IMG/VR virus record: IMGVR_UViG_3300036853_000446
Span: 343,635-407,634 of that record
Length of the DNA stretch: 64,000 nt
Strand: one strand, 5' to 3'
Below the pieces are notes generated by a model. That model was not told the DNA's origin and ran no database searches. It saw only the letters and a list, made by a program, of their open reading frames with translations. The position numbers and the translations under genes are program-made. Positions 68 to 40,698 of the stretch are shown one piece after another. Numbering within the stretch: the stretch's first letter is position 1; every line of letters starts with the position of its first letter.

Positions 68-475
68 GTGGCGACGCCGATCTCAGAAGGGGTGTCCGCA
101 GGGCGCTTGCTTGTCTCGACGCACTGCGAGAGCGCCTGCAAAAGAGCTGACGGTTTGAACCGCCCTCCGACGTGGCTACGGCCACATCGCGAAAACGAGC
201 CTCTGCCGCCTCGAGGAGCGTTCGAGTACTGGAGACGAGCGAGCGAGCCCGTGCTCAGCTTCCTCCTCGACGAGCCCCGGAATTGGAAGACCCTGGATCA
301 ATGGGCCAAGGACACCCGCTTTGGCAAGAGCCGTCTTCGTCACGTGCTCGCCTGGCTCGAGCAGCGCGGAGAAGCTTACACGTTCACGCAATTGGAGGGA
401 CGAAAGGCGATCATCTATTGGGCTATTCCAGAGACGTTGAAGCCGTGTACCGCTTTGCGACCGCCGCAGAGGTGA
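68..475 (+). CDS. hypothetical protein, possibly small winged-helix-like; start uncertain
   Basis: ORF track; C-terminal half looks globular (LDQWAKDTRFGKSRLRHVLAWLEQRG); converges on the 2H gene. Confidence 0.35.
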   Translation: MATPISEGVSAGRLLVSTHCESACKRADGLNRPPTWLRPHRENEPLPPRGAFEYWRRASEPVLSFLLDEPRNWKTLDQWAKDTRFGKSRLRHVLAWLEQRGEAYTFTQLEGRKAIIYWAIPETLKPCTALRPPQR

Positions 476-1025
476 AACGGTCAACAACCCTCCGGGCCAT
501 GGCCGCCACCACCGCGTTGGTTGGGTTCAGTGCCAGGGGGAACGTCACCGTGAGCTTGCGGTCCCCCTCGTCACCGCCCCACATGCTGATCTCGTGCGCG
601 CCCCATTCGATGGTTGGGATTCGAAACTCTTCGACGGCGTCGGGCGCGTAGGCCAGGGTCACATGCGGCCTAAACGTACGGAATTTCTTGTTGAACTCGA
701 CGCCAGCCTCATCGAACGCCGCCACCAGATTGTTGCGCAGCGTGTGCAGGTCATCGGACTCGATGTGCGCGACGACAGGGTGTGACTCGTCGCCGCTAAT
801 GGGAAAGCTCGCGACCCGCGACGTCCCTACGGTGAATGGTCGCGTCCGGGCCGTGACCGCGTAGGTGGCCTTGATGGCTTCGGCGAGCATGTCTATAGGC
901 ACGTCGTCACCGATATAAATCAGCGTAATGTGCTGGTGGTCCCTTGGCGTCTTGTCCCCGGGGACTTCAATGTCGCTCAAGAGACGTGACGTGGGCGCGG
1001 GAATCGGCAGTCCGATCATCGCCAT
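423..1025 (-). CDS. 2H phosphoesterase (2'-5' RNA ligase / Acb1-like fold)
   Basis: Two HxT motifs (QHITLIY, PHVTLAY) about 90 aa apart; C-terminal tail ARRVVDRF/AAVAKRY. Confidence 0.85.
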   Translation of the reverse strand: MAMIGLPIPAPTSRLLSDIEVPGDKTPRDHQHITLIYIGDDVPIDMLAEAIKATYAVTARTRPFTVGTSRVASFPISGDESHPVVAHIESDDLHTLRNNLVAAFDEAGVEFNKKFRTFRPHVTLAYAPDAVEEFRIPTIEWGAHEISMWGGDEGDRKLTVTFPLALNPTNAVVAAMARRVVDRFTSAAVAKRYTASTSLE

Positions 1026-5479: not shown

Positions 5480-6075
5480 ATGTGACCCTTCCTCTGAACC
5501 CTAAAGACCTCTGTGTCGCCCTCGACCGAGAGGCCCCCGCCCACCTGACACTTGCTCCTTTCGACCTCGACGACGTCAGAGCCACACTTCGCCGTCGCCG
5601 TCCTCTACTGCTCCTCGAGTCGAATTCGGGGGCAATGGTCGACGTCGTGGAAGCGCTGCGGCCACATATCGAGATCTTCATCGACAGCCTGGTCCGCGTC
5701 GCCGATCTCGTGATCGGCGATGATTTACAGCAGGTTCTCGATCTCGGTCTTTATAATCCGCGGCTCGGCGTCCTGTTCGAGACCCTGTGGGCTGCGCGAT
5801 TCGAGCACCTCGAGCATCGGGATTTCTCAGCCCCTTTCCTCGAGCTGACGAAGACGACATTCGACGATCCGTCTGCCCTGATTCGCAATGACGCGCTCCT
5901 CTTCTGGTTAACCCTCCTCCGGCAAAACGATGCCACGACCACGAGACAGGTCATTCTCGTCATCAGGAGCCCTGGCGGTCTGGACCCCGCGATGTGCGCC
6001 TTCGTTCGTGCGGCCGAGCATTGGATATCGCTCGGCTCTCCCGTCCGCATCGTCACGGAGGCGACCGTCAGTTGA
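5476..6075 (+). CDS. hypothetical protein
   Basis: Start overlaps the previous stop (ATGA); Leu-rich globular composition. Confidence 0.6.
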   Translation: MNVTLPLNPKDLCVALDREAPAHLTLAPFDLDDVRATLRRRRPLLLLESNSGAMVDVVEALRPHIEIFIDSLVRVADLVIGDDLQQVLDLGLYNPRLGVLFETLWAARFEHLEHRDFSAPFLELTKTTFDDPSALIRNDALLFWLTLLRQNDATTTRQVILVIRSPGGLDPAMCAFVRAAEHWISLGSPVRIVTEATVS

Positions 6076-6556
6076 GCACCTTCGAAGGGTCGGGAGGTAG
6101 CTCCGGCGTCTCGAACTCGTTCGGAATCCCGGCCTTCCGCAGGGCATGCGCGCGACCCAGCTCGATCAGCTTATACGCAGCATTATGAAGGGCCTTGTCC
6201 GCTTTGGAGGCTTCGAGCCGCGCTTGGACGGCCTGCGCCGTCCCGACCATCTCGTTCATCCTCTGCGCGGCGACTTGATTCGCCATGTCGGCGTAGCCCG
6301 CCTGGAGCAGGGCCTGCTCCCACTCGAGAAACAGCTCCCGCGCCTCATGAACCGGGTGCTCCGCCGTCCCTAAGACTTCCACCTGAGCCCGACGCCGCGC
6401 GAGTGCGTCCCAAAACACAGCGGCGGCCTCGTCGGGCGTATAGTCCGGCCCATAGATCAGCCTGCCGTCCGGTTTTATCGTCACGAGCACTCGAGACGCC
6501 GACGTGCCGATGACCAAATCCTTCTCCGAAGGTGAATCGTCTCGTGAATCGCCCAT
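6068..6556 (-). CDS. hypothetical protein
   Basis: 162-aa ORF, helical composition, fills the gap between plus-strand genes. Confidence 0.55.
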   Translation of the reverse strand: MGDSRDDSPSEKDLVIGTSASRVLVTIKPDGRLIYGPDYTPDEAAAVFWDALARRRAQVEVLGTAEHPVHEARELFLEWEQALLQAGYADMANQVAAQRMNEMVGTAQAVQARLEASKADKALHNAAYKLIELGRAHALRKAGIPNEFETPELPPDPSKVLN

Positions 6557-6708
6557 AAAATCCGCGCCAGTCCGATGGTCGCCCCATTCTAGCGCGCTAC
6601 CGAAGTTTACGGCAAGCTGCCTTCGGGTTGCGGCGGTCCGCGCGCATCACCAAGGTCACACCGAGTTGCTCCCGACTCTTTAGGGAGTCACTCTTTATAG
6701 TAACCCAA

Positions 6709-6915
6709 ATGAAGTGGATGTTGCTCGCGCTCTTGGCCCTCGGAACTCCCTCTCGAGAGTCACACTGTTTCCATAACTGCTCGCAATGCGCCTTCCGGTG
6801 TAAACGCGCGAGTGACCCTGAAACGTGTCGCCAAACTTGCTTCGAACTCAAACGCGAGTGTTGCCAAAGTTGCAAGTCAGGACCAGGACCTCAAAAGACC
6901 TGCGCCTGCACATAA
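6709..6915 (+). CDS. small putatively secreted cysteine-rich peptide
   Basis: MKWMLLALLALG hydrophobic leader followed by 11 Cys in about 50 aa. Confidence 0.55.
   Translation: MKWMLLALLALGTPSRESHCFHNCSQCAFRCKRASDPETCRQTCFELKRECCQSCKSGPGPQKTCACT
6796..6802 (+). promoter_or_regulatory. CGGTGTA motif, 9 nt before rnhB start
   Basis: Exact heptamer. Confidence 0.6.
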
Positions 6916-7573
6916 ACAGAAGGCCAACGCTCTCCTCGAGAAATCCACTGCGGAGTGGATCCTCGGCTCGGACGAGGCCGGTTATGGTACACTCGCGGGC
7001 AGTCTGGTCGTCGTCGCCATGGCGGTCCGTCGATCGTGGGGCGATCCTGAGGTTACCGATTCAAAGGTGCTTTCTGACACAAAACGTCGGAGCATCGTGC
7101 GACGCTACCGTGGGGCTGAGGACGTCTTCAGGGTCGTCCACACGACGTCTCCTCGAGGGATCGATGAGGTGGGTGTTTGGACCTCACTGATCAACGCTCA
7201 CAATCAGGTGCATGAAGCTTTAGAAGCCAAACTGCGAGCCGTAGACCCATGGGGCGAGCTGCTTCACATCGTGGATGGTCTGGAGAACGCGCGAAGACGC
7301 CTCGACGCCCGTTTCACCCCACTATCCTCGGCGGACCTCTATGTTCCGGCCGTCTCGCTGGCGAGTTGCTTCGCCAAAGTCGTTCAATGTGAGTTGATGG
7401 ATCTTGCTGCGAAAAGCTACCCAGGATATGGCTTCGAGAGGCACCGCGGCTACGATACGCCGCAGCATCGAGAGGCGCTCGCGCGACTCGGGGTCACTCC
7501 GATCCACCGCAAGAGTTACCGGACTATCCGGGACCTGCTGAGCGCCGATGGCTTCTCTGCTGATCGTGGATGA
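6812..7573 (+). CDS. rnhB: ribonuclease HII
   Basis: GSDEAGYG, DSK, IVDG, HRGYDT...H motifs of RNase HII. Confidence 0.88.
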   Translation: MTLKRVAKLASNSNASVAKVASQDQDLKRPAPAHKQKANALLEKSTAEWILGSDEAGYGTLAGSLVVVAMAVRRSWGDPEVTDSKVLSDTKRRSIVRRYRGAEDVFRVVHTTSPRGIDEVGVWTSLINAHNQVHEALEAKLRAVDPWGELLHIVDGLENARRRLDARFTPLSSADLYVPAVSLASCFAKVVQCELMDLAAKSYPGYGFERHRGYDTPQHREALARLGVTPIHRKSYRTIRDLLSADGFSADRG

Positions 7574-7949
7574 TGACCTCATGGTCCAACGCGCTCTGAT
7601 ACGTGCCCTTCGCGAACACATCTGCGTTGCAGCTTGCAACGGCTGCGAGGCCCTCCGATTGCTCGGCGTCCAGCCCTTTGACCTCGTCATCTCGGACGTC
7701 GACATGCCCGTGATGAATGGCCTCGACTTCTACAGGAAGGCCCGCGAGCTTTTCCCGAACCTTCGGATCATTTTCCGGACGGGATCCAAAGTACCGGGAC
7801 TTGCGTCGATCGGGGTCCCGGTCCTACCAAAGGACTGGCCTTTGACCGACACGCTCGAGGCGATCGATTCTTTCGTAACGCGCGGTGTAACGCACATGGA
7901 TGCCGGCACTCTTCAAGGCAAAGCCCTTTCTGAAATGGGCGGGCGGTAA
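7548..7949 (+). CDS. single-domain response regulator (CheY-like receiver)
   Basis: LIVDDD, LVISDVDMPVMNG (phosphoacceptor Asp), IFRTG, LPK. Confidence 0.88.
   Translation: MASLLIVDDDLMVQRALIRALREHICVAACNGCEALRLLGVQPFDLVISDVDMPVMNGLDFYRKARELFPNLRIIFRTGSKVPGLASIGVPVLPKDWPLTDTLEAIDSFVTRGVTHMDAGTLQGKALSEMGGR
7883..7889 (+). promoter_or_regulatory. CGGTGTA motif, 10 nt before dam start
   Basis: Exact heptamer. Confidence 0.6.
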
Positions 7950-8766
7950 GACTCGTCTCCTCGAGACGCTATCGAATCTTCTCCCCGAGACGATCGACAC
8001 CTACTACGAGCCCTTCATCGGCGGCGGGGCTTTGTTCTTTCACCTCGCACACGAGCAGCGCTTTCGGCACGCGATCCTCAACGATTTCAATCCCGAACTG
8101 GTCAACTGCTACCAAGTCGTCCGCGACGCAGTGGAGGCCCTCATCGCGCAGCTAAAGACATTCCAGGTGACCCGCGACGAGTTTTACGCCGTGCGCGCGC
8201 TCGACCCTCTCGCGCTGTCTACCGTCCACCGGGCTGCCCGCACGATCTATCTGAATCGCACGTGTTTCAACGGCCTGTATCGGCTGAACAAGCGCGGCGC
8301 ATTCAACGTGCCGCGGGGCGATTACAAGGATCCTCGCGTTGTCGATGAGGGCAACCTCCACGCTTGCTCTGCTCTGCTTCATTCGGTGACGCTGCGCGAG
8401 GGCGGTTTCGTTCAGGCCGTAAAAGGGGTCGTCAGCGGGGACGCCGTCTATTTCGATCCCCCCTACGTGCCGCTCAACGCAACCAGCAATTTCAAGAGCT
8501 ACACGAAGGAGGGCTTCACGTTGGACGACCAGCAGCGGCTCGCCGAATGCTTTCGAGAGCTGGCGGATCGCGGCGTCTTCGTTCTCGAATCGAACTCGGA
8601 CACGGCCACCGTCCATAACCTCTACAAGGGTTTCGAGAGACGGGTCGTTCGGATGCGCCGCAACATCAACAGCAAGGCCGACAGTCGAGGCGCCGTCAAC
8701 GAGTTGGTCGTCATGGTCCGACCCGGCGGTGGCGAAGAATGGGATCACCGTGGCTATCAATCCTAA
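7900..8766 (+). CDS. dam: DNA adenine methyltransferase (Dam/D12 class)
   Basis: KPFLKWAGGK, YYEPFIGGGA, YLNRTCFNG, YFDPPY. Confidence 0.92.
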   Translation: MPALFKAKPFLKWAGGKTRLLETLSNLLPETIDTYYEPFIGGGALFFHLAHEQRFRHAILNDFNPELVNCYQVVRDAVEALIAQLKTFQVTRDEFYAVRALDPLALSTVHRAARTIYLNRTCFNGLYRLNKRGAFNVPRGDYKDPRVVDEGNLHACSALLHSVTLREGGFVQAVKGVVSGDAVYFDPPYVPLNATSNFKSYTKEGFTLDDQQRLAECFRELADRGVFVLESNSDTATVHNLYKGFERRVVRMRRNINSKADSRGAVNELVVMVRPGGGEEWDHRGYQS

Positions 8767-9031
8767 GGACTGGCTCGGAAGGGATCGGCGACTGCACCGA
8801 ACCCTCGTAATTGCCCTCATCGTCGTGCTGGCCACCCTTCGTGATACGTTCTGGCGAGACGCTCTCACTTATGTGGGTCTGGTCCTGATCGGTATTCACG
8901 CGGAATTCCGCCATGCTGCCTTACGGCATCTGATCGCCAGTCGCCCTTTCGACGATTTCGTCAGAGCCTACCGTCCTCGAGGACGAGATGGGCGGGATGC
9001 CAACCCGCCCGAACCTCGCATCTACAGTTAG
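8750..9031 (+). CDS. small membrane protein
   Basis: Two hydrophobic stretches (TLVIALIVVLATL; ALTYVGLVLIGI); overlaps the Dam 3' end. Confidence 0.45.
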   Translation: MAINPKDWLGRDRRLHRTLVIALIVVLATLRDTFWRDALTYVGLVLIGIHAEFRHAALRHLIASRPFDDFVRAYRPRGRDGRDANPPEPRIYS

Positions 9032-9269
9032 CGCAGAGCAGCGTGCAACGGTCGAGAGCGGGTTGGATTTGCTCCCAACTCGAGGAGGACGAGATGTAGA
9101 AAGCGCGGTCGCGGGTGTCGGCGAAATGGAAATGCAGCGCCGCCGGACAGCGACAGTAGCCACAGATCTGGCAACGCCCGCCCTTGTACGCGAGGGCCCT
9201 TTCCTTGAGTCTGAGGTGCCGCCGGTGGGCTCGGAAGCGACGCTGCCACCGCTCATCGAGTTCGCCCAT
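8961..9269 (-). CDS. HNH-endonuclease-like Zn-finger protein with degenerate catalytic His positions
   Basis: YKGGRCQICGY...ALHFHF...LDRCTLLCANC; CGGTGTA motif 10 nt upstream. Confidence 0.75.
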   Translation of the reverse strand: MGELDERWQRRFRAHRRHLRLKERALAYKGGRCQICGYCRCPAALHFHFADTRDRAFYISSSSSWEQIQPALDRCTLLCANCRCEVRAGWHPAHLVLEDGRL

Positions 9270-9279
9270 AGCCCCGTCT

Positions 9280-9286
9280 TACACCG
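9280..9286 (-). promoter_or_regulatory. CGGTGTA motif, 10 nt before HNH-like start
   Basis: Exact heptamer in a 20-nt intergenic gap. Confidence 0.6.
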
Positions 9287-9289
9287 CCT

Positions 9290-10396
9290 TCAGAGGGTCA
9301 GCTCAAAGCGCTTCATCACCGACGAAGGTATCGGCATGTTGAACACGTACGTCGCGAACGTCTCAGCGAAATCCTCACGCACGTTCGTCGCCGCGTAGCT
9401 CGACACGGTTTCTACCTTCACGGATTTCAGCCGAACGTATCGGTGATTGGGGCGCACGACTTGCCGTTCGACCCAAGCTCCCGCCTCGCTGTAGGCTCGC
9501 CAGTAATCCTTCGGTGAGGCTCCGATCTCCTTCAGATACTCGGCGACGGGAAGCCCCTTCTCTCGGAGAAATTTCTTCGCAGCCGCCGGCCTGAACTCGC
9601 CCTTCACGAGTGCTTGAAACAGATCCTGCCGCTGGTCGACGGTAAGTCCGCCCGCCGAGTACAGGTCCTCGTACTGCTCTTGCTGTGCCGTCGAGAGATG
9701 CTTGTGCCATCGCCGGTGCCCTATCTCGTGTACCAGCGTGAAGACGTCCGAGTGTTGATTTTTCGCATCTACGGTCAGCGCGATCGAGTCGCTGGCCTTA
9801 AAATATTCCCCTGCAACGCCAGGGCGACTCACTTTCGTATCCAGCAGGACTTCCCCGTACAGCAGGTCTCCGAACCCCTTTGCACGGACACGATCGGAGG
9901 CTTTGTCCAGCACCTCGAGGGGCTCGGCGTACTCCGACACGGAAAAGCCGTACTTGTTGACGATCTGCCATGGCCCATGGCTGAAGGTCTTCTCAACCTT
10001 AGCGTAGCCTTCGATCCGGTCTGCGACACGGCTCAACGACTTGAGCGTGTCTGCAAGCGACTCGAGGTGGTTGTGAATATGAATGTCTTGGATCGTCTCG
10101 TCGAGTTCGAGAGATCGGGAGTCGAAAGCTCTCTGAAGGTGCCGCAACCACCCGATCACGTTTTTCAGCTTCCGCTGCTCGTCTGGCCGCGAGAACTTGA
10201 TGTTGTCGAGCGCCGACGCGAGTGGCGCCAGCTCCCGTCCAAGTTCGAGGAACCGCTCCTTGGCTGCGGGAATGTTCTTCGCCTGGAGGAGGGCTTCGAT
10301 TCGCGGCCGCGCCGCCCTGAACGCTTGAATGGCGTCGTTCACGAGCTGTTTCGAGGCGTAGCGGGTCGCGACCCGGTACACCATCGTACTGGTCAC
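9290..10396 (-). CDS. zincin metallopeptidase paralog C with N-terminal RVATRY tag
   Basis: LVHEIGHRR...SSYAATNVREDFAETFA; GTG start overlaps the upstream stop (GTGA). Confidence 0.8.
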   Translation of the reverse strand: MTSTMVYRVATRYASKQLVNDAIQAFRAARPRIEALLQAKNIPAAKERFLELGRELAPLASALDNIKFSRPDEQRKLKNVIGWLRHLQRAFDSRSLELDETIQDIHIHNHLESLADTLKSLSRVADRIEGYAKVEKTFSHGPWQIVNKYGFSVSEYAEPLEVLDKASDRVRAKGFGDLLYGEVLLDTKVSRPGVAGEYFKASDSIALTVDAKNQHSDVFTLVHEIGHRRWHKHLSTAQQEQYEDLYSAGGLTVDQRQDLFQALVKGEFRPAAAKKFLREKGLPVAEYLKEIGASPKDYWRAYSEAGAWVERQVVRPNHRYVRLKSVKVETVSSYAATNVREDFAETFATYVFNMPIPSSVMKRFELTL

Positions 10397-11526
10397 AGAA
10401 GCGACTCCATGATCGCGCCAATGCCCGGGGGCAGGTTCTTCCCCATGACATAGTGCGCGAATGCTTCCGCAAAGTTCTCCATCCAGCCGCCTGTCTTCCC
10501 GTAGCTCGTGACGTACTCGGGCTCGCGGACGACCTCCTTCGTCTTGATGGTAAAGTCCTTGCCGCTGACGACTGCCTTGCGCAGCTCCGCTTCGACGTCC
10601 TCCCCCTTCACGAACCGAACGCCAAGCTTTTGGGCAACGGAGCCAGCCGGCGTGCCGATGGTATGCCCCATCCACTCCAGGAACAGCTCCGATGGTTTCG
10701 GCTGGGGCTTGCCGTCACGCCGCGCCTTCGCGATGTCGATGTATTCGGCCGCGACGTTCTCCCGAGCCCCGGCGTCATATGTGATCTCGCGGTGCTCGGG
10801 CGTCGTGGAAAGACGCATGAACTCGTCCCGCTGGTCCTTGTTCTTCCAGAACTTGTAGAAGTACCGGTGCCCAAACTCGTGGCACAAGGCGTGGACGTCT
10901 CCGATGTTGCCCCGGGCCTTGAGGCTCAAGTAGACAACGTCGTTGGTCACATTGTAACGAGCGGCCGCCATATGATTCGACAGATTCTTGACGATGAAGA
11001 CCCGCCCGTAGAGGACCTTTGGAAACTTTGGCTGGAGGATCTTGTAGGCCTTGTCGAGCGCCTCGAGACATTCTCGAACTTTAGGCCCCGTGACTCCGTG
11101 AGGCACGATCTCGAAAACGCCGTGCTGGAAGGTCTTGTCGTCGGCCTTGTTGATGATACCCTGCAGCCATTTGATTTCGAACGCGAGTTGGCCAAAAAGC
11201 TCCTGAGGAGCTGCGTCTGGTTCGAGCACCAGTCGTCCAAGAGCGCGAATGATGGTCAATGCTCTCTTCTGATGGCGGGGGCCGAGGGCGGAGTACCAGT
11301 CCGCGTCCACAGACCATCGGTCACCGTTACGTATGACATCGAGTTCCGCGAGCGCCTGCTCTACCAGGGCCACGTTGAACTTACCCGTACTCAGGCCCTG
11401 AACGACGGGGCCCAGAGCGCCGCGCGACAGGATGTATCGCGCCGCTACCCGCCCGGTCATCACAGCGGCTGCGGCCACCCGCGCCTTTACAGCCCACCGC
11501 GTGGCCACCCGAGCCGTCAGGTTCAC
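10393..11526 (-). CDS. zincin metallopeptidase paralog B with repeated N-terminal RVAxR tags
   Basis: LCHEFGHRY...TSYGKTGGWMENFAEAFA; GTGA overlap with the upstream gene. Confidence 0.8.
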   Translation of the reverse strand: MNLTARVATRWAVKARVAAAAVMTGRVAARYILSRGALGPVVQGLSTGKFNVALVEQALAELDVIRNGDRWSVDADWYSALGPRHQKRALTIIRALGRLVLEPDAAPQELFGQLAFEIKWLQGIINKADDKTFQHGVFEIVPHGVTGPKVRECLEALDKAYKILQPKFPKVLYGRVFIVKNLSNHMAAARYNVTNDVVYLSLKARGNIGDVHALCHEFGHRYFYKFWKNKDQRDEFMRLSTTPEHREITYDAGARENVAAEYIDIAKARRDGKPQPKPSELFLEWMGHTIGTPAGSVAQKLGVRFVKGEDVEAELRKAVVSGKDFTIKTKEVVREPEYVTSYGKTGGWMENFAEAFAHYVMGKNLPPGIGAIMESLL

Positions 11527-12884
11527 GCGACACCTTGAAGCGACAGATAGCGCTCTGCCACTCGCGTCGCGGCCAGTTTGGCCCCACCCAACCCACAAAC
11601 CTGGCTGAAGAACTCCCGCGTCCATGGTTTGACGGCGCGAGGCCCCTTCGTAATCCACAGGCGAAAGACTTCGGCGAAGGCTTCCATCGGGTTCGTATTG
11701 CCGTAGTCGGTCGTCTCTTCGATCAGAACCGGCTCCCCTACCTTGGTCTCGAGAAATTTCGTGTAGGCTGCGGGGTCAAAGACTTTCACGTCCCAAGGCA
11801 TGAGAATCATCTTAGCTAGCTCTCGAAACTTGGCTTCATCCGCGGCACCCCCCGCGTGAGGCAGAACCGCCCGTAACCGATCGTCGTCCCCGTCCAGAGC
11901 CCTTAGTGTTTGAGAGTCAACCTTACGAATGATCAGGTCGGCGAACCTACGCACGTCGTCGCGCGTGATCTTCACCGACCGCGACATCATGACCTCCTCC
12001 CAGTGGTTTCGTGCCTGCACCGGCAATTCCCGAAAGTAGAAGCGGTGCCCACACTCGTGTACGAAAGTTCCGTGACCAGAATCGTCTCCCACGATTCCGA
12101 GCGAATACATGCTCAATGTGTCGGTCGCGGGCTGATACATCCCGGTTGTTGCCCACTCTTTCGCCTTCGTGTCGAAGTCGACCGTTACCGTCAGCCCTTT
12201 GACTGCCCCTCCGAATCCAGACCGTTTGATCTCGTCGACTCGTTGCCTGAGGCTTCGAAGGAAGGACTCGAGATCATTCTGATCATCATCGTCACGTCCA
12301 AAGTTCAGTAGCACGACGTGGACGCCGCCTACCTCCAAATGGTCGACCGGGATGTAACGCTCGACTTTGCCTTCTGGTGACATTTCAAGGTAGTCGTCGA
12401 TTTCCTTCAGCGCCTTCGTTGCCTTCAGTTGATAGCGCTTGATATTGCGGTCACGTTCGTGTCGAAGCTTCGACCAGTCGGGCTCCTTGCTCGGGTGGAA
12501 GACGGGGAAGAGCTGGTGGGCATCGAGTTCGTGCCTGAGGTCCCACGCGCTCGTTCGAATCGCCTTCTCCATGTGGGTTTCGGGCCGGTCCGACGCATGG
12601 GTCTTCGGGAGGAGTTCGCGATAAACCCACTCCTCAAAGTTTTCCCGAAAGTTACGAAACAGACTTCGGGCCTGCTCGAACACGGCGCGCGCATCACGAA
12701 CGCGAGTCACGTCCGCGTCGTAGGGTACATCGGCGTCGATGGAGCGGTAGATCTTCGTCATGATGCGGAGGTCTTTCCGCCACCGATCAACAGTACTCTT
12801 GTCGAGGGTCCTCGCGCTTCGACCGCCGGTTGACAGATAGCGATGGACTAGACTCGCCGTGAGAGGTTCTCCGTCCATGATCAC
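11523..12884 (-). CDS. zincin metallopeptidase paralog A
   Basis: FVHECGHRF...TDYGNTNPMEAFAEVFR; C-terminus TRVAERYL; GTGA overlap with the topoisomerase stop. Confidence 0.8.
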   Translation of the reverse strand: MIMDGEPLTASLVHRYLSTGGRSARTLDKSTVDRWRKDLRIMTKIYRSIDADVPYDADVTRVRDARAVFEQARSLFRNFRENFEEWVYRELLPKTHASDRPETHMEKAIRTSAWDLRHELDAHQLFPVFHPSKEPDWSKLRHERDRNIKRYQLKATKALKEIDDYLEMSPEGKVERYIPVDHLEVGGVHVVLLNFGRDDDDQNDLESFLRSLRQRVDEIKRSGFGGAVKGLTVTVDFDTKAKEWATTGMYQPATDTLSMYSLGIVGDDSGHGTFVHECGHRFYFRELPVQARNHWEEVMMSRSVKITRDDVRRFADLIIRKVDSQTLRALDGDDDRLRAVLPHAGGAADEAKFRELAKMILMPWDVKVFDPAAYTKFLETKVGEPVLIEETTDYGNTNPMEAFAEVFRLWITKGPRAVKPWTREFFSQVCGLGGAKLAATRVAERYLSLQGVA

Positions 12885-13699
12885 CGCTCCAGATAGATTT
12901 CTGCGACGCAGGCCGCGGTCTTGACCATCTTGTCCATCACGCTGCCATCTTTCAAATACGCATCGGATAACCCAGGCACGAGGTATTGATTCTCCAGCGT
13001 ACCGGCCTCGTGGCCAACAGCCTCTGCTGTGGTCTCGAGTGCCTTCTTGAACTCCTTCTTGAGCTGAGTCTTACGCTCTTTCGGATCGGTTGGAAGCTTT
13101 CCACCTTTGCTCCGGACCGCCTTGAGTTCCGTCTTCATGGTTTCGTTTGCATGAAGTCCGCGAATGTCCTTGGCACTGATGTCAAATTCGTCGAGAAAGG
13201 TATTCACCTTCTCCGCCGTGATCTTACCCCCTTCATGGCAGAAGAGATCGCCGTCTTTGCAGTTCTCATGAGCATGTTTGAGAGCCGAGACGAGGGCCTT
13301 GTCGGTCACGGTCTTCTTCTGCTTGACTCCGCTCTTGCCTGTGTAGCTGATCGTAGCCTTGGCCTTGCCAAAGCTCACGTGGCTCTTCTGCCACCCGGTC
13401 ACGCCCACGTGACCGAGTTCTTCCTTCGAAGTATCATTGCCGACCCGTTCCGCGGTGTGATCCATCAACCCGACGACGAGCGCCGTCAGGGCCGTCTCGG
13501 GGTCCTTTGACGCGAGGTCCTTCTTGACGCGGGCGCGGAGCTTGTGGACGCTCTTCCGCAGCTTCTCGAGCCGTTTGGCCTTGTCGCTGTTGCGCTTGGC
13601 AATTTGCCGCTCGGAATACTCGTAGACGACCGTGTCCGAGTCCGGGATTTTCTTCTTGGATTTGTAACGAGCGGCAACTCGGGCAGCAATGGACGTCAC
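12881..13699 (-). CDS. type IB DNA topoisomerase (catalytic core only)
   Basis: Catalytic pentad ERVGN (R), YTGKSG (K), KDIRG (R), AVGH (H), NQYL (Y). Confidence 0.88.
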   Translation of the reverse strand: MTSIAARVAARYKSKKKIPDSDTVVYEYSERQIAKRNSDKAKRLEKLRKSVHKLRARVKKDLASKDPETALTALVVGLMDHTAERVGNDTSKEELGHVGVTGWQKSHVSFGKAKATISYTGKSGVKQKKTVTDKALVSALKHAHENCKDGDLFCHEGGKITAEKVNTFLDEFDISAKDIRGLHANETMKTELKAVRSKGGKLPTDPKERKTQLKKEFKKALETTAEAVGHEAGTLENQYLVPGLSDAYLKDGSVMDKMVKTAACVAEIYLER

Positions 13700-13812
13700 C
13701 CCCCTGCCGCGGCAACAGAGGATTAGGGGCCGGCGATTCTGCGCGTCCGGCGAAACCCGTTCGGGTGACGGCGCGGCCGGGGGCTAACTTCCACTTGTGC
13801 AGCTCCCCTGGC

Positions 13813-15105
13813 ATGAGCCTCTCGGAGTCACCGTCGAACAATCTACCGGTCGCCATCTATCATGCCTTCGACCTGCCATTCACCGAGGTCGAAAGTCTCG
13901 TGGAAGTCATTGCAAAGCAGGGTTACTCTCACGTTCAGATCCCGCCCGCTCAGAAGTCGAACGACGCGGGCGGCGCGTGGTACGAGCGCTATCAGCCCGT
14001 TGACTACACCGTGATCGAGGGACGAGGGAGCGAAGCCGAACTCGAGAGTCTGACCAAGGCGGCCCATGCCTGCGGCCTGCGAGTGATCGCCGATGTCGTT
14101 TTCAACCAAATGGCCAACAGCCCGCCTTACTACGATAAGGAAACGGGCAAGCTCGATTTCCCCGGCTTGACTCCAGAGGACTTTCATCCCAAGAAGGACA
14201 TCGATTACGGGAACCCAGACCTGATCAGAGACGGTTGGCTCAACGGCGATTTGCCGGACCTGGACCATACCCGACCCGCCGTGCAGCGGCTTCAGAAGGG
14301 GCACCTCGCCAAGTTGCTCGCGCTCGGCATCGACGGCTTCCGGTTTGACGCCGCCAAGCACATGGCGATGAGCACCCTGCAAGACTATCTCGAATTCATC
14401 AACGTCGAGACCAACAACGAGGCCTGGAATTACCTCGAGGTCATCGAGGGCGATGGCATCTCGGGAGATAGCTACCAAAGCATCGCTGCCGTTACCGATT
14501 TTCGTCTCTACCATGCCGTCCGCGATGCCTTTTCCTTTGGAGGAGACCTAAAGAATTTGCGCATGCCACGCGGACTCGACGACTCGCGCAGCGTCCTTTT
14601 TGGCATGAATCACGACACCGATACGAACAATACCGAAGGCCTCAACGAGATGGCTTACGCCGAACGAAGTGATTCGCTGCTCGCAACGGCCTACGTGCTG
14701 GCCCGCGAGAACGGGGTCCCCCTCGTGCTCCATAGTGACAATCAGGTCGACTATATCCAGGCCGGCGCGAAGTTCCGGCAGATCATGCGAGCGAAATCGG
14801 GCGAAGGTCTATCCGTCACGGAGAATGTGCTCGGGATCGTCGAGGGAGACACGATACTCGTCATGGAACGGGGGACCGAAGGACTCTTCATCGTCAACAA
14901 GGCCGCAGAGACCTTCGATATTTCGAAGCTCGACGTGACGTTTACTCACCTCGGTGGGCGCTACCGCGAGCTGCGCCACGGCTTTACGATGGACATCGAA
15001 CGGAAAGACGATCGGAAGGCCATCGTCAACTGGGGCGATACGAATCGAGATGGCCTGTACATCAAGGGAAGGGATGCCCTCTATTTCGTCCGCGCCGCTT
15101 CATAG
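13813..15105 (+). CDS. GH13 alpha-amylase, no signal peptide
   Basis: Conserved regions DVVFNQ, GFRFDAAKH (nucleophile), YLEVI (acid/base), MNHDT; WYERYQPVDY. Confidence 0.9.
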   Translation: MSLSESPSNNLPVAIYHAFDLPFTEVESLVEVIAKQGYSHVQIPPAQKSNDAGGAWYERYQPVDYTVIEGRGSEAELESLTKAAHACGLRVIADVVFNQMANSPPYYDKETGKLDFPGLTPEDFHPKKDIDYGNPDLIRDGWLNGDLPDLDHTRPAVQRLQKGHLAKLLALGIDGFRFDAAKHMAMSTLQDYLEFINVETNNEAWNYLEVIEGDGISGDSYQSIAAVTDFRLYHAVRDAFSFGGDLKNLRMPRGLDDSRSVLFGMNHDTDTNNTEGLNEMAYAERSDSLLATAYVLARENGVPLVLHSDNQVDYIQAGAKFRQIMRAKSGEGLSVTENVLGIVEGDTILVMERGTEGLFIVNKAAETFDISKLDVTFTHLGGRYRELRHGFTMDIERKDDRKAIVNWGDTNRDGLYIKGRDALYFVRAAS

Positions 15106-16040
15106 GCAGAGATGACCAGCTGGAGCATCTTGTACGGGTTCGGAGAGTCGAGGGTCATCGGCACATTGAATCCCGCAGCTTTCGTGTGCCCCCCTCCCCC
15201 GTGAGCAAGGGCCAAACTGCCGCAGTCATACGAACCCCGCGAGCGCGAACTGCAGAGGAGCTTGAAGCCGCCCTCTTCATGGGCGATGTCGTACGCCACG
15301 ACCAGGTCGATCTTTGCCCCCATCGCCTCGGCCACGTCGCTCGACCATTTCACGCCCTGAAACAGGGCGACCCGAGTACCCACGGGGCTCGTCCAGTGGT
15401 AGGCTCTCTCGGTAATCTTGGCGACCGTCTTGAGCTTCTTGGCCCAGAGATGCCCGCCAAGGCTGAGTTCGCTTCGCCAAAAAGCGGGCCCGTCCTTCAG
15501 CAAGTGCTCGAGGGGCCAGAACCTCAAGGCCTCGGCCATCTCACAGGCTTTATTCCAATCCGGGTCCCCCGTTTGCCACGTGTCACGGATGCCGCTCAAT
15601 CGGGCGAACTCGCGGACAATGAGGGGCTCGGCGTCGAGCAGCTCCGCTGACCCCTTCAGCGGCCTCCAGACGTGCTCGTAGGCGAGCACGGCACCGCAGA
15701 CCCCAGGGTCCTTGTCCTCGTCCCCAAAGACCCCGAGGCCCGCCTGGACGAACGCCTGAACGCTACTCCCCTTCTTGTGATGGTCGAGAACGATGGTTCC
15801 CGCGTCGATGAAGGCCTGCGCCCTCTCTTCCGGGGGGCTGAAATCCACGAACATCATGCCCGGCACAGCCTCGAGGTTCGATTTCTCAGTGGTACCGTGG
15901 TCAATGACCCGGATTTCGGGGCGACCCGCGCCGTAGGCGTCGGCCACGATCATGGCGGATGCGACGCCGTCTGGGCAACTGTTGCCGTGGCTGATGACGA
16001 GTTTGATGTTCCGAAGTTGCTCGAGCGTGAAATATCCCAT
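15081..16040 (-). CDS. DHH/DHHA1 family phosphoesterase
   Basis: SHGNSCPDG, FVDFS, LDHH, GGGGHTKAAG. Confidence 0.88.
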   Translation of the reverse strand: MGYFTLEQLRNIKLVISHGNSCPDGVASAMIVADAYGAGRPEIRVIDHGTTEKSNLEAVPGMMFVDFSPPEERAQAFIDAGTIVLDHHKKGSSVQAFVQAGLGVFGDEDKDPGVCGAVLAYEHVWRPLKGSAELLDAEPLIVREFARLSGIRDTWQTGDPDWNKACEMAEALRFWPLEHLLKDGPAFWRSELSLGGHLWAKKLKTVAKITERAYHWTSPVGTRVALFQGVKWSSDVAEAMGAKIDLVVAYDIAHEEGGFKLLCSSRSRGSYDCGSLALAHGGGGHTKAAGFNVPMTLDSPNPYKMLQLVISAYEAARTK

Positions 16041-16050
16041 TCAGTGGCGT

Positions 16051-16057
16051 TACACCG
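16051..16057 (-). promoter_or_regulatory. CGGTGTA motif, 10 nt before DHH start
   Basis: Exact heptamer, intergenic. Confidence 0.6.
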
Positions 16058-16085
16058 CGCCAGGAAGCGATCAGGTTTCTAGCGC

Positions 16086-16841
16086 TCAGTTTTCGAGGCG
16101 GTGCTTCTTCTCACGAATGGCGTCGAACAGCTCATTGCGCAACCGTTGGCTGGCGATACTGGCCATTCTCCCCCGCGAGGCCCGGTACCACGTCTCGAGT
16201 TCGTCCATGCCTGCGATCCCGGAAAGCTCCGCCAAGAGGACCTGCTGTGTCAGCACCTCGGTCGTCTGCCTGGGCGGGTCGACGAAATCGCGATTGGTCG
16301 TCGCCTCGGGATGTTCCTCGATCTTCTGGTGGGTGGCCGCCAGCTGCGGAGCGAGGTCGAGGAGACGGTTTATTCCCTCACGGGCTTTTGCCGCCGAGTC
16401 TTGGTCGAAGCCGTACGCCGCGTTGATGTAGATTTGCAGAGCCTGCCAGGCGTGGAGAATGAGATCGAAGTGGGCCTGCGTCTTGCAGTTCGGTATTGCC
16501 TGCTTGATGGCATCCTCGATCATTTGGGCTGGTGTCTCCGCCGGTGTCTCCGCCGGTGTCTTCGCCGGTGTCTTCGCTGGCGTCTGCATTGGTGTCTCGG
16601 CTGACGACGGGGTTACGACCTGCTTCTCCTGCTTCTCCCGAGCCTCGACCTTCAGCGCTTCGAGATCGATACCCGCGGGCTGGCCCAGGGCCTCGAGGAG
16701 GCGCTCGATGTACGCGAGGCCCTCATCCTTCGAGAGAAGGTCTCGAAACAGACCCCGCAGTGCGTGCTGAAAGTCCTCATCGCCGTGTTCCTGTCGAATC
16801 CTTTGAAGAGTTTCGACCATTTGTTGGAGATTGATCTGCAT
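16086..16841 (-). CDS. hypothetical helical protein with TPA[KE] linker repeats
   Basis: 251-aa ORF with 12-bp tandem repeats in the linker. Confidence 0.65.
   Translation of the reverse strand: MQINLQQMVETLQRIRQEHGDEDFQHALRGLFRDLLSKDEGLAYIERLLEALGQPAGIDLEALKVEAREKQEKQVVTPSSAETPMQTPAKTPAKTPAETPAETPAQMIEDAIKQAIPNCKTQAHFDLILHAWQALQIYINAAYGFDQDSAAKAREGINRLLDLAPQLAATHQKIEEHPEATTNRDFVDPPRQTTEVLTQQVLLAELSGIAGMDELETWYRASRGRMASIASQRLRNELFDAIREKKHRLEN
16531..16590. repeat. 12-bp coding tandem repeat (TPA[KE])
   Basis: ggtgtctccgcc / ggtgtcttcgcc units. Confidence 0.8.
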
Positions 16842-16847
16842 GTCTTC

Positions 16848-17156
16848 TCAGGCTTGCGTCTTGTGGAGGCGATTACGTTGGGACTCGATTAACCGCGTGA
16901 ACAACTTGTCGGCGGCTCGTTTGGCACGATGCGGCGCCACGCCGAATCTCAGCATCAGTCGTTCGGCGGTCCCTCGCATCAGCTGGGGGGCGGCCTGTGG
17001 GTCCTTGAGAATCGACCAGCACGGTTTGCAGTAGACGAGCGAGGCGGGCGGTTTCACACCCGCCTTGACAAAGGTGATTTCCTCATCAGCCCTCAACTCG
17101 AGACACACACAGCTTGCATCGGGCGTCGACCGCTCGCAAACAATGCAGGTCTTCAT
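16848..17156 (-). CDS. small CxxC zinc-finger hypothetical protein
   Basis: CIVC...CKPC; start overlaps the upstream stop. Confidence 0.55.
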   Translation of the reverse strand: MKTCIVCERSTPDASCVCLELRADEEITFVKAGVKPPASLVYCKPCWSILKDPQAAPQLMRGTAERLMLRFGVAPHRAKRAADKLFTRLIESQRNRLHKTQA

Positions 17157-17788
17157 GTAGAACGACTCAACATTTTGAGCAGCGTCAGCGGGATCTCTTC
17201 CAGCTGAATTTCTTCCTCGACGATCTGACAGCCGAGCAGGATGGCCACCGAGAGAGGAACATGCTCATCCAGGCCCCGCACGTGGTCGCGACTCGCCTTC
17301 GAGGCACGACGCTCGGCTTCCGAGAATTCCGCCGTCTCCCGTTGAGTGTTCTCGAATGTCTCGGGGCCAAAATAGACCGAGCGGCACATGTCCGGATCCT
17401 TCGTGGACGAGGTGACGCGACATCGGAACGGTCGACTGTAGTAGACGCTGCAAAGGCCATCGACGAGGAGCGGACACGGGATGGCCGCCATCAACCAGAT
17501 CTCTGGCGCTGCACCGAAGGTCAAATGCGCGTGACGCTCGAGACTGGTCTTCAGCTGCGATCGCCATAGGCCATCCTGCTGGAGAACCCGATACAAGGAG
17601 ATGCCCTCCCAGATCGAGATCGTGACGGGGTAGTGGCAGCAATGATTGCAACCTTTGTGGCAGGTGATGTTCTCGAGGCCCACCTTCATGGCAAACGAAA
17701 CTGCGAGCCTGGATTTGGCGAGACGGCAGGAGGCAAGCCCCTGCTCCACCACGAGAGGGAGGTGGCGAACGCCTGAATCAGTCGACAA
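17153..17788 (-). CDS. YkgJ-family cysteine cluster protein
   Basis: CHKGCNHCC, CPLL..GLCSVYYSRPFRCR. Confidence 0.8.
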   Translation of the reverse strand: MSTDSGVRHLPLVVEQGLASCRLAKSRLAVSFAMKVGLENITCHKGCNHCCHYPVTISIWEGISLYRVLQQDGLWRSQLKTSLERHAHLTFGAAPEIWLMAAIPCPLLVDGLCSVYYSRPFRCRVTSSTKDPDMCRSVYFGPETFENTQRETAEFSEAERRASKASRDHVRGLDEHVPLSVAILLGCQIVEEEIQLEEIPLTLLKMLSRST

Positions 17789-18266: not shown

Positions 18267-18268
18267 CG

Positions 18269-19237: not shown

Positions 19238-19333
19238 CTCGCTAACTCCTTTTCGGTTCTCCTCCCTCGAAACGAGAGATTCATCAAGAACGACTCCGGA
19301 ACACTTGGGAATGTCAAGTACAAGTTGTAAGGT

Positions 19334-19651: not shown

Positions 19652-19869
19652 AATTCTCGGTCTAGGTCCTGATCGCAAACGATCCCTAGAGATCGCAGGG
19701 TTTTCTCCTCCTGATTCAGCTCCAGGGCTCTCTCGAGGCCCAGCACTCGGCGGTCCGCCACCTTCCGTGCTCGCACCAAAGCCTTCTGACAAAGAGCCCT
19801 CCACTCTCGCGGCGTCGATGCGGCGCGCGGTATGACCGGTTCGCGATTACGCAGTACGGTTTTCGGCAT
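19648..19869 (-). CDS. small hypothetical protein
   Basis: 73-aa helical ORF coupled to neighbours. Confidence 0.35.
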   Translation of the reverse strand: MPKTVLRNREPVIPRAASTPREWRALCQKALVRARKVADRRVLGLERALELNQEEKTLRSLGIVCDQDLDREF

Positions 19870-21834: not shown

Positions 21835-22350
21835 TCATAGGTTTGGGATCGCCTTCCGGAGTCCTTCGAGAGCAATATCGAGCCAAGCCGAGAAGTGTTT
21901 GTGCCAAATCTCGAGTCGGCGCACATCGTAGGCGATTTGGTTCCGTTTGAATCCCGGCCGCTCGAGGAACTCGGTTACCTCCGTCGCGAACTCGATTTGT
22001 GCTTTCGTCGGCGGGTCGAGATAGGATTCGATTCGAGAGGCCGTTTCTGGATTTGCATCCATGACGTCATCGTAAAGAGCGAGCAGCTCACGTTGGATGC
22101 TGGTGAAAGGCTCCCAAAAGTCGATGAAATCATCCTGCCAGACGAAGTCCCCATCCAAATCCTTCCGTGACGAGAGCCGCGCCCCCCTCAGCGTGGCGGG
22201 GAAAGTCGAAGACCACGCCTTGTATTTCTCGAGCTGGGCCAAAGCCTCCTCGAAAAGGGCCCGGCTCTCGTCGACAGCGAGGTGCTGCCGCGCCACGCGG
22301 TCCGACATGATTCGCTCGGTAACCCGGAGGGCGATGGTTTGGCGGGGCAT
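21835..22350 (-). CDS. hypothetical protein with N-terminal RVxxR tags
   Basis: MPRQTIALRVTERIMSDRVARQHL; TCCTTTTAT motif upstream. Confidence 0.6.
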   Translation of the reverse strand: MPRQTIALRVTERIMSDRVARQHLAVDESRALFEEALAQLEKYKAWSSTFPATLRGARLSSRKDLDGDFVWQDDFIDFWEPFTSIQRELLALYDDVMDANPETASRIESYLDPPTKAQIEFATEVTEFLERPGFKRNQIAYDVRRLEIWHKHFSAWLDIALEGLRKAIPNL

Positions 22351-38204: not shown

Positions 38205-38217
38205 TCAGGCCACGAGT

Positions 38218-38974: not shown

Positions 38975-39610
38975 TCAAAAGGCGAAGTAGACGCCCGCGT
39001 TGACGTTGTGGAGGGGCTCCGTCCAACCGATTCCGTATCCCGCGTAGATACCGAAGTTGGTGGTGAGATCGAACCCGAGCCCTGCCCCGACGCTGCGAAA
39101 GCCGGCGGCGACGTTGAAATTGACCCACTCGAAAAAAGCCAGGTCAATCAAGATGCCCGCATCGACGCCGCTCTCGAAACTGCCGTGCGAGAGCTTGAAC
39201 GGGAGATAGCTGAGATATGCCTTGGGTCGAAAGCGGAAGCCGTAGGTCTCCGGAGTCTTCATACCGGCGGTGATTTGAACCTCACCGGTTGCGTCGACGT
39301 CGAGATGGCACCACTTCATCCGAATCGTGAACGGCCTTTTTGGGTCGGCCCCCGTATAGAAGACGCGACCGTCTTCGTCGGTCACGATCACCACTCGGTC
39401 GACATCGAAGACGGGTTTTTCGTGTTCGAGGCATTGGCGATCCCTCGCAATCGTCAAGAAGGTGTCTAGGTCTTTCTGAGGGAGACAGACGTAGCCCTGG
39501 GGAGCTTTGCAAGGGTCCTGCGCGTCCGCGAAGGAGGGAGCCATCGCGGACGCCATGGTCAGCACGGTTGCCGTGAGGACGCGCTTTTGCAGACGCTGCG
39601 ACACCGTCAT
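38975..39610 (-). CDS. signal-peptide protein with C-terminal amphipathic beta-strands (outer-membrane barrel-like)
   Basis: Leader ending AxA (ADA); terminal ...FGIYAGYGIG...VNAGVYFAF ending in Phe. Confidence 0.6.
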   Translation of the reverse strand: MTVSQRLQKRVLTATVLTMASAMAPSFADAQDPCKAPQGYVCLPQKDLDTFLTIARDRQCLEHEKPVFDVDRVVIVTDEDGRVFYTGADPKRPFTIRMKWCHLDVDATGEVQITAGMKTPETYGFRFRPKAYLSYLPFKLSHGSFESGVDAGILIDLAFFEWVNFNVAAGFRSVGAGLGFDLTTNFGIYAGYGIGWTEPLHNVNAGVYFAF

Positions 39611-40698
39611 GCGGCATCCTCGACAGCGGCAGACTCCAGAATCTCTTTGAGTTCGGGAGGCGAGGTTACCACCTGGGCAAGCGCCTTCAGAATCGGTTTG
39701 CCCCCGCCGCGCATCTTCGTGATGACCTTGTGACTGCCCGGAGAGTAGTACGTCCCGAAGATGGCCTTCAGGATACCCTTCTTGTCGAGCGCCTTGGACA
39801 GCTCCGGGCCGAGCTGAAATTCACGGCCATTGACCGTAATCACAACGGGGTTCCCTTCCCCGAGCTTCCCATAGACGATGTTGATCCGAATGTCCCTCTT
39901 GCGGTTCTGCCAGGGGTCGTCCTCGCCAACCAATCCGAGCAGGCTGACCGCGTCCTTGAAGGAAACCGCCTTGGTCAGATGGTCATCCATGCGCTCGGTA
40001 AACTTGGCCCCTTCGGGTATCATGTTGACTTTGGCCCCGTAGCCCTTCTTCAACTCGTGCGGAAATTCCCCGTAGAGGTCTCGAATCACTTTCGGGGCGA
40101 GCGTTCGGAATTCCCCGCGGACCTTCCTTTGAAGCATCCACCACTCGTCGATGTCTTCTCCAGTGTATGCATTCCTCGCCGTGTAATGCTGGGCGGCGAC
40201 GAACACGTGGGTCTCTCCATCCACGCCATAAAGGACGTAAGCCGATGATCGGGTGTCACCGTACCCGCCATAGCTCGTCTGGGTCTTGAATTTCCAATCG
40301 ACCTGATGGACGCCCGCCTCGGCGAACGCCTCCTCGAAGGTGATCCGCACGGGATCTGGCTTAGGACGCCCCTTTGGATTGGCGATTGGGCCATCCCAGG
40401 GTTCCGTCTCGGGTGCCGGCGGATCGCGAGGGGCGCCTAGATCGCGGTCGGGTCGCAAGTGCCCCGTCAGAACGTCTTTCGCAATGTTGTAGGGCTTGAG
40501 GGCGGTCTGGTCCGCCGCCTCCGCCGGATTCTCCCGTAGGATCTCGGTGACCTTGGCCCTGTACGCCGTCTGCACCTGAGCATCCGTCGGTCTGTCCGTT
40601 GAAGGAAAACCTAGCGTCTCGAGCGCTTCGGCGTAGGTGAAAGCCTTGAAAACCCGGTAGCGGGTGGCGACGCGAGAAGCGATGCTGGGCATATCCAT
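39607..40698 (-). CDS. protein with J-domain-like N-terminus lacking HPD; RVATRY tag
   Basis: ALETLGF...DAQVQTAYRAK...ENP...YNIAKDVL. Confidence 0.6.
   Translation of the reverse strand: MDMPSIASRVATRYRVFKAFTYAEALETLGFPSTDRPTDAQVQTAYRAKVTEILRENPAEAADQTALKPYNIAKDVLTGHLRPDRDLGAPRDPPAPETEPWDGPIANPKGRPKPDPVRITFEEAFAEAGVHQVDWKFKTQTSYGGYGDTRSSAYVLYGVDGETHVFVAAQHYTARNAYTGEDIDEWWMLQRKVRGEFRTLAPKVIRDLYGEFPHELKKGYGAKVNMIPEGAKFTERMDDHLTKAVSFKDAVSLLGLVGEDDPWQNRKRDIRINIVYGKLGEGNPVVITVNGREFQLGPELSKALDKKGILKAIFGTYYSPGSHKVITKMRGGGKPILKALAQVVTSPPELKEILESAAVEDAA

Follow-up and report, generated by a model that had tools for sequence, protein, structure and literature searches.

A portable helical peptide shared by unrelated enzymes of a huge phage, and its possible role in docking head-linked modules

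A short peptide motif is shared by six proteins encoded in a 64,000-nucleotide stretch (here called the window) of the 407,634-bp IMG/VR viral contig IMGVR_UViG_3300036853_000446, which belongs to a huge phage of ~408 kb. The carriers are a type IB topoisomerase module (TopoIB), three putative zincin metallopeptidases (zincins A, B and C), a J-domain-like protein and a 2H phosphoesterase. As judged from sequence comparison, this peptide (the tag) is a portable element under selection, and it is placed on the modules of a head-linked multi-enzyme set. The explanation we favour, to which we give a probability of about 0.5, is that the tag forms a docking helix which recruits the modules into the assembling phage head; it is drawn from the gene context described below.

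The tag follows the consensus [LIM]-[AS]-x-[RK]-V-[AV]-x-R-[YFW]-[LK]-x-[AK], often with a proline 6-7 residues beyond it, and is predicted to form an amphipathic helix of 10-15 residues with both arginines on one side. When the window was searched in six frames with the regular expression RV[AT]xR[YFW], eight matches were obtained, six of them in coding frames on the minus strand, and every one of these six is terminal. A hidden Markov model (HMM) of 15 positions was then derived from 106 unique sites of relatives. It detects seven sites in the six proteins at 7.1-16.1 bits: the N-terminus of TopoIB (16.1 bits), the C-terminus of the 2H phosphoesterase (12.2), the C-terminus of zincin A (10.6), the N-termini of zincin C (10.0) and of the J-like protein (8.8), and two sites at the N-terminus of zincin B (7.6 and 7.1). 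All seven lie no more than 35 residues from a protein terminus. The best score found in 20x shuffled proteomes was 7.2 bits, every other open reading frame (ORF) of the gene list scored at most 1.7 bits, and ~0.05 sites are expected at equal score. The iterated HMM recovers the same seven sites, with the next ORF at 0.6 bits; since it was taken over by flanks specific to TopoIB (lysine at +6, +8 and +9), the first HMM was used for the censuses. In a six-frame HMM scan the only intruders were antisense or out-of-frame ORFs. Chance is excluded by these statistics as the source of the shared motif.

An earlier sequence-only reading had noticed such a motif at the termini of these proteins and of one further ORF. 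It is borne out by the HMM for TopoIB, zincin A (C-terminus), zincins B and C, the J-like protein and the 2H phosphoesterase, while the N-terminal copy of zincin A proved degenerate and ORF 21835..22350 (minus strand; RVTERI, RVARQHL) had to be dropped as a carrier, as it scores ~0 bits and the sole homologue found (5259-5829 of locus L020) is untagged. That reading had also not noticed the motif in replication or tail proteins, which agrees with our results: no tag was found by the HMM in the DNA polymerase, DnaB, ClpX, Dam, SNF2 or tail-fibre ORFs of the window.

The six tag hexamers are encoded with differing synonymous codons. Selection thus acts on the peptide and not on the DNA, and a DNA-level repeat or palindrome is ruled out by the same codon differences. 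On the plus strand, the antisense of the tag regions of zincin C (10362-10379) and zincin B (11402-11605) reads RVATRY and HRVATR, respectively, in non-coding frames. Such tag-like antisense peptides appear because the codon set of the tag is near-palindromic, and six-frame motif scans could be misled by them; the plus-strand RVATRY at 10362-10379 was discarded as the antisense of the zincin C tag.

Conservation of the tag was followed in three families. Among the 120 listed TopoIB homologues (of 499 found; those listed are 57-100% identical to the query, many on contigs of 300-570 kb), 89 carry the tag in the first 45 residues and 16 in the last 25, and in an alignment of 33 sequences (A1) each residue of R7-V8-A9-A10-R11 shows conservation of at least 90%. 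The tag opens all nine zincins of alignment A2 (18-46% identity), three of the nine also end with it, and the tag arginine is among the few invariant residues beyond the catalytic HExxH and E.FAE. An N-terminal tag scores at least 5 bits in 13 of the 23 homologues of the J-like protein and is recognisable by eye in others, some having two or three copies; the tag is kept at identities as low as 26%, and the distant tagged homologues are DnaJ domains that have the HPD tripeptide and match PF00226. Overall, the tag is carried by TopoIB, zincin, 2H, J-domain and GNAT proteins, by giant ORFs with nucleotidyltransferase and InPase domains, and by several families without assignment, in N-terminal, C-terminal or internal position and at times in tandem. 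That the tagged proteins have unrelated folds holds for TopoIB, the 2H phosphoesterase and the J domain (the last by PF00226 in the homologues).

In structural models made with AlphaFold2, the tag lies outside the folds, in appended helices of low predicted local distance difference test score (pLDDT). For TopoIB the pLDDT is 86.5, with ~56 for the tag helix (residues 4-11) and less than 50 for the C-terminal helix, and Foldseek matches the model to 3m4a (E 7e-13). Profile matches of TopoIB to the Protein Data Bank entries 2f4q and 2h7f (~1e-16 to 1e-17) begin at residue 20, so the tag is outside the solved TopoIB core.

Homologous modules and further tag sites occur in related viral contigs. 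In 80 TopoIB-centred loci, taken from contigs of 5-620 kb, the regular expression gives 152 matches in 524 thousand residues, against ~10 by a residue-frequency estimate, and 83 of the 152 are outside the TopoIB gene. The tagged proteins other than TopoIB form 18 similarity clusters, one being zincin C of the window. TopoIB, the zincins and the 2H phosphoesterase of the window are homologous to modules within ORFs of 900-3,046 residues in related huge phages, and in many of these ORFs the tag stands directly before or after a module, i.e. at module junctions. The ORF of 3,046 residues contains 2H, poly(A)-polymerase-type nucleotidyltransferase and InPase (PF18823) domains by Pfam and a zincin region by blastp; a MuF domain was not seen in the ORFs scanned. 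Separate tagged ORFs in the relatives are GNAT acetyltransferases by Pfam. In one locus (L021), whose TopoIB is among the most similar of the set, TopoIB and zincin A form one ORF with the tag at the junction. The closest contig found (L091, TopoIB 74% identical) keeps the order amylase, TopoIB, three genes, Dam, receiver, and one of its three genes after TopoIB has a weak LPD1 match. In some fused ORFs (L062, L078, L083) a charged segment, EREDEEAERL..P..KPPR, was seen after TopoIB.

Such multi-domain ORFs recall the polyvalent proteins, which according to Iyer et al. (2017, PMC5512222) carry two to fifteen effector or other domains per polypeptide. In the window, TopoIB and the zincins are four genes on the minus strand between 13699 and 9290, with GTGA stop/start overlaps at 12884 (TopoIB/zincin A), 11526 (A/B) and 10396 (B/C), which indicates that the four genes are translationally coupled. 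Together with the GTG start of TopoIB, these start codons agree with the N-termini given in the sequence-only reading. From its sequence this block is best explained as a split polyvalent protein, in which TopoIB is followed by three zincin metallopeptidases as four coupled products.

The position of the tag was counted for 73 unique non-TopoIB sites in complete ORFs of the relatives. N-terminal sites are enriched: 35 of the 73 lie no more than 30 residues from the first possible start, where 8.6 would be expected. On these data the tag would best be described as a module-flanking helix, mainly on the N-terminal side, that becomes terminal once the module is encoded alone. A further relative was found by tblastn of TopoIB against 50,697 phage records, namely LR745208.1, an unannotated 485-kb metagenomic phage (TopoIB 53% identity); distant matches (28% identity) came from Xanthomonas and Erwinia phages. 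The regular expression gives five matches in the whole LR745208 genome, near chance. The HMM gives at least eight sites above the shuffle maximum, scattered over 485 kb and mostly N-terminal. Each of the three zincin homologues has a scoring site, in two cases just below that maximum, and so has the 2H homologue.

The tagged modules are linked to the head genes of the relatives. Homologues of protease, portal and large terminase subunit (TerL) were found within 10 kb of TopoIB at 51, 33 and 32, respectively, of 75 TopoIB-centred loci, and at most of these loci, as in LR745208, portal, TerL or prohead protease is no more than 10 kb away. In LR745208 the order is TerL, portal, a small ORF, the TopoIB fusion, scaffold-like ORFs and prohead protease. 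We also collected 80 portal-centred loci, 61 of them full-length. The 61 loci have 47 unique tag sites of at least 8 bits, all on the portal strand. Upstream sites, at -8 to -2 kb, belong to a tagged family of 130-176 residues and to standalone TopoIB; downstream sites, at +1.8 to +5.5 kb, belong to a post-portal protein of 900-1,370 residues, and few lie beyond. No tag site was found within the portal gene at these 61 loci, nor was the tag found on any of the 28 portal, 26 TerL or 39 prohead protease homologues at the TopoIB-centred loci.

The head module of the window's own contig (locus L154) has the order TerL, a tagged ORF of 409 residues, DNA methylase, portal, a protein of 915 residues, protease and major capsid protein, the last at 19453-20424 of the locus (phrog_2522, 1.5e-52). 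The portal lies at 9695-11626 and the protease at 15398-17011; further ORFs of this head module are at 14371-15114, 15118-15471, 17015-18778 and 18854-19489. The 915-residue post-portal protein (11602-14346) bears a variant tag, SLNYK..GG..RLALRFL, and in post-portal ORFs of loci L092-L170 a conserved SLNYK..GG element stands right before the tag, ~70-100 residues from the N-terminus. The L154 post-portal protein also has poly-Asp/Glu and poly-Lys runs and a segment that looks scaffold-like. Searches of Pfam, PHROG and PDB found nothing for the tagged 409-residue ORF (6222-7448, between TerL and DNA methylase/portal), whose C-terminal tail (...EREYRVPP...) is similar to that of a NUDIX protein in L091 (2433-4130). 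LR745208 398706-400076 and its homologues were considered as major capsid protein and rejected. Two ORFs of ~430-450 residues that flank TerL in LR745208.1 (408397-409683 and 411851-413206, locus L010) have similar N-termini (KVELDPNDRQR and KTELNPNDKER); insertion of mobile-element genes into the head module may account for them.

Taken together, these observations can be explained by a tag which acts as a portable docking peptide. Each module would retain its docking helix and bind one conserved partner in the assembling head, for which the scaffold or core, the post-portal protein and the shell interior are candidates. Co-packaging would then not depend on whether the modules are fused or split, nor on whether their genes lie 250 kb away from those of the head, and after delivery together with the DNA the modules would act on DNA, nucleotides and proteins of the host. 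The steps of binding to a head component, packaging and injection are those that we infer. The docking helix is preferred because it explains at once the conserved extreme termini, the tandem copies, the tagged genes at a distance, and the absence of the tag from portal, TerL and protease. A more general version is possible, though we hold it only tentatively and below an even chance: the tag may be a position-independent cargo-loading peptide of a clade of 300-600-kb phages, so that any protein carrying it is docked and co-delivered with the DNA, the arsenal evolves by fusion, fission and relocation, and the J-domain protein recruits host Hsp70 to refold the ejected enzymes.

Several results weigh against a docking helix for the head. 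The sequence-only reading took the toolkit to be a head-associated set; this is supported by the homologues beside portal, TerL or protease in relatives, whereas the TopoIB cluster of the window itself is ~250 kb from the head module of its contig. It also took the tag to be terminal, which is true of every site in the window and fails in the relatives for 29 of the 73 non-TopoIB sites (~40%); these internal sites are mostly in ORFs of at least 900 residues, so a junction or processing role fits them equally well. C-terminal sites are not enriched (9 of 73 within 30 residues of the end, 8.2 expected). Canonical RVAARY was counted by eye, and without correction for phylogeny, at ~14 of 24 standalone and ~6 of 31 embedded TopoIB domains. 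The higher share on standalone domains speaks for the docking helix, as would be expected if the tag is needed chiefly by a module that is not fused to others; against it, embedded TopoIB domains often have a degenerate copy (xVAAKY) only. In the AlphaFold2 model of zincin C, the tag is the low-confidence beginning of a helix (residues 4-38), behind which come a helical bundle and an alpha/beta core, so that the tag leads directly into the domain's first helix. As a capsid cargo, a J-domain protein would not be an obvious choice, and the tblastn search with TopoIB found no cultured relative among the phage records.

The main alternative is that the tag is a junction or processing signal. As an exosite or cleavage determinant it would guide the zincins or the prohead protease in dividing polyvalent proteins into modules, and it would persist after gene splitting because these peptidases still dock on their partners or trim them. 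This is unlikely in our view, though it accounts for a good part of the data. The motif is present at many junctions of the 900-3,046-residue ORFs, the SLNYK..GG element often precedes it in post-portal proteins, and the system is always found together with zincins, which carry the tag themselves, even where dispersed as in LR745208. Autoproteolytic processing by zincins has moreover been predicted by Iyer et al. (PMC5512222). A cut 3-8 residues from the initiator methionine or 5-13 residues from the stop would, however, free nothing useful, yet these positions are under strong purifying selection, and no conserved scissile pattern is found just upstream of the helix. The T4 prohead protease recognises an L/I-x-E-type pattern, which is not in the tag consensus. 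Processing of the tag by the prohead protease had been proposed by analogy in the sequence-only reading; we found no support for it, and no conserved candidate site follows the helix.

A second alternative is that the helix is recognised by a chaperone or unfoldase (the phage ClpX-like ATPase, host ClpX or DnaK), or that it is an address other than the capsid, such as DNA, membrane or a phage-built compartment. Recognition peptides of AAA+ proteins and of Hsp70 are terminal and basic-hydrophobic, and the window encodes both a ClpX-like ATPase and a tagged J-domain protein. On the other hand, LR745208 is tagged but has no ClpX homologue at E<=1e-3, which weakens the case for a degron of the phage ClpX; internal and tandem copies are unexpected for a degron, and the linkage to the head module would stay unexplained. 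We regard this alternative as improbable. A Tat (twin-arginine translocation) signal was rejected, as the arginines are not adjacent and a charged run, not a hydrophobic stretch, follows the TopoIB tag.

It seems about equally improbable, or slightly more so, that the helices simply hold separately translated modules together as a non-covalent polyvalent protein, any packaging being mediated by some other part. Fission and fusion do occur at the tags: TopoIB and zincin A share one ORF in L021 but are separate genes in the window, where the split between zincins A and B has a tag on either side, and the four genes are coupled in translation. But the N- and C-terminal copies follow one consensus and are not complementary pairs, a helix of ~3 turns is short for stable self-association, and lone tagged genes are found far from any partner (the J-like and 2H genes of the window; LR745208 over 485 kb). 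Finally, a lack of any common function, by chance or through a shared ancestral N-terminal segment as could be inherited by the three paralogous zincins, is very improbable given the same motif on TopoIB, 2H, J-domain and GNAT proteins of unrelated folds, its excess over expectation in the window (7 sites against ~0.05) and in the 80 loci (152 matches against ~10), and its family-wide conservation.

The tagged proteins of the window, all on the minus strand, are as follows. TopoIB (12881..13699; 272 residues, with a GTG start at 13699) matches PF01028 at 8.7e-26, and its N-terminal tag has the core RVAARY at 13664-13681. Alignment A1 shows no variation at R85, K122, R180 or Y239, and conservation of at least 90% at H230, a spacing that fits what we take to be the Arg-Lys-Arg-His-Tyr catalytic pentad of TopoIB enzymes. 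The C-terminal tail, CVAEIYLER, looks like a decayed tag by its sequence. Zincin A (11523..12884; 453 residues; HECGH...EAFAEVF) has a C-terminal tag core RVAERY at 11547-11564. Its N-terminal LVHRYL (12834-12851) scores below 0 with the HMM; it is read as a decayed copy because it aligns in position with the canonical tags of the eight other zincins of A2. A weak PHROG match of zincin A to a 'tail assembly chaperone' (E 5.7e-4) was not used.

Zincin B (10393..11526; 377 residues; HEFGH) carries two tags in tandem at its N-terminus (RVATRW at 11494-11511, RVAARY at 11434-11451), separated by a looser ARVAAA, and is homologous to a tagged zincin of LR745208 (36% identity, E 1e-48). Zincin C (9290..10396; 368 residues; HEIGH...EDFAETF) has its N-terminal tag core RVATRY at 10358-10375. 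Foldseek with the zincin C model returned nothing significant; helical bundles dominate, with LTA4 hydrolase and Wss1 at E ~0.3-0.7. The assignment of A, B and C as zincins rests on the HExxH...E.FAE motif and on sub-threshold Pfam Peptidase_Mx matches; HExxH and E.FAE, the signature with the downstream glutamate, are invariant in A2.

The J-domain-like protein (39607..40698; 363 residues) has an N-terminal tag core RVATRY at 40657-40674. Its HPD tripeptide is replaced by ENP (...LRENPAEA), so the window copy may no longer stimulate Hsp70. The 2H phosphoesterase (423..1025; 200 residues) contains HITL and HVTL as its two H-x-T/S motifs and C-terminal tag copies RVVDRF (474-491) and AVAKRY (447-464). 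It alone among the tagged window proteins gave meaningful PHROG matches: it matches RNA-ligase families (~1e-7), and the 2H region also occurs inside an 861-residue PHROG annotated as 'head maturation protease'.

The TopoIB gene of the window matches its contig at 100% identity. The window has a GC content of ~60%, and megablast of 9000-14000 against phage records gave no match. Its ORFs also include a family A DNA polymerase, a DnaB-type helicase, tail-fibre proteins, a ClpX-like ATPase, Dam, a receiver domain, a SNF2 helicase and an alpha-amylase-like protein. Some of this content is unusual in a phage: the ClpX-like AAA+ ATPase with a C4 zinc finger (22377-23624), the alpha-amylase-family protein (13813-15102), which is oriented divergently from the TopoIB operon, and the receiver domain adjoining Dam (7548-8763). 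Three plus-strand ORFs with lipoprotein-like signal peptides (41881-44022, 44138-44623 and 49278-49844), one of them large and cysteine-rich, are set among the minus-strand tail-fibre genes, and an NGWLIPV segment is common to the large tail proteins 44966-49081 and 53623-56316.

A short DNA element, CGGTGTAAC, recurs in the window. It is exact at 7883-7891, 16049-16057, 38216-38224, 3441-3449 and 51049-51057, and 13 more copies have one mismatch. With up to one mismatch, 18 matches were found against 8.8 expected, a number obtained in none of 100 shuffles. The element is ~8-10 nt upstream of the Dam, 16040 and SNF2 gene starts, and ~80 nt upstream of the ORF start near 3531-3552; it is not present at the TopoIB operon. 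It may serve one class of genes as a promoter or in translation initiation.

The tag is conserved over a large clade of uncultured phages, and it would offer a testable handle on how capsid cargo is chosen. If the docking helix is real, it allows the proteins that are probably injected by hundreds of metagenomic huge phages to be listed from sequence, it explains how polyvalent proteins can be split and scattered in a genome while keeping their destination, and it provides a simple means to load foreign proteins into large capsids. The tagged set would also suggest what these phages do at the first moments of infection: TopoIB, several metallopeptidases, a 2H phosphoesterase, acetyltransferases and a J-domain co-chaperone. 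2H phosphoesterases are of a kind used against nucleotide signalling.

Four known systems bear comparison. According to Iyer et al. (PMC5512222), polyvalent proteins are predicted to be packaged and injected, zincin domains are proposed to process them, and the InPase domain (PF18823) is one of those described. The giant ORFs of the relatives agree with this, as they hold arrays of zincin, 2H, GNAT, nucleotidyltransferase and InPase domains near portal and terminase. The window differs in that its modules are separate ORFs, so that several domains on one polypeptide are found in the relatives and not in the window itself, and its array is in four coupled genes far from the head module. TopoIB and J domains were not found as modules in the accessible part of that paper. 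Neither a conserved junction or terminal helix nor the motif strings of the tag were found in the literature searched, which for the helix comprised the polyvalent-protein and jumbo-phage papers in so far as their text was accessible.

In T4, the internal proteins' capsid-targeting sequence is a short shared sequence that sends diverse proteins into the scaffolding core and can carry foreign proteins (PMC3012670). The tag is likewise a short sequence common to otherwise diverse proteins; the analogy is functional, and no sequence relationship is claimed. Unlike the T4 sequence, the tag is also C-terminal, internal and tandem, and has been recognised here by sequence comparison. Cargo peptides of encapsulins and microcompartments are also short, terminal and portable between unrelated enzymes, may be at either terminus, and dock to the inner face of the shell; encapsulin shells share the HK97 fold with phage capsids. 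Their consensus is another one, however, and those shells carry no DNA and inject no cargo. Docking domains of split polyketide synthases and non-ribosomal peptide synthetases are short terminal helices at split points, whose complementary N/C pairs set the order of the subunits, whereas the tag has one consensus at both ends and is also found on lone genes. By descent, the tagged proteins belong with the polyvalent proteins of Iyer et al., and by function the closest known systems are the T4 capsid-targeting sequence and the cargo peptides of encapsulins and microcompartments.

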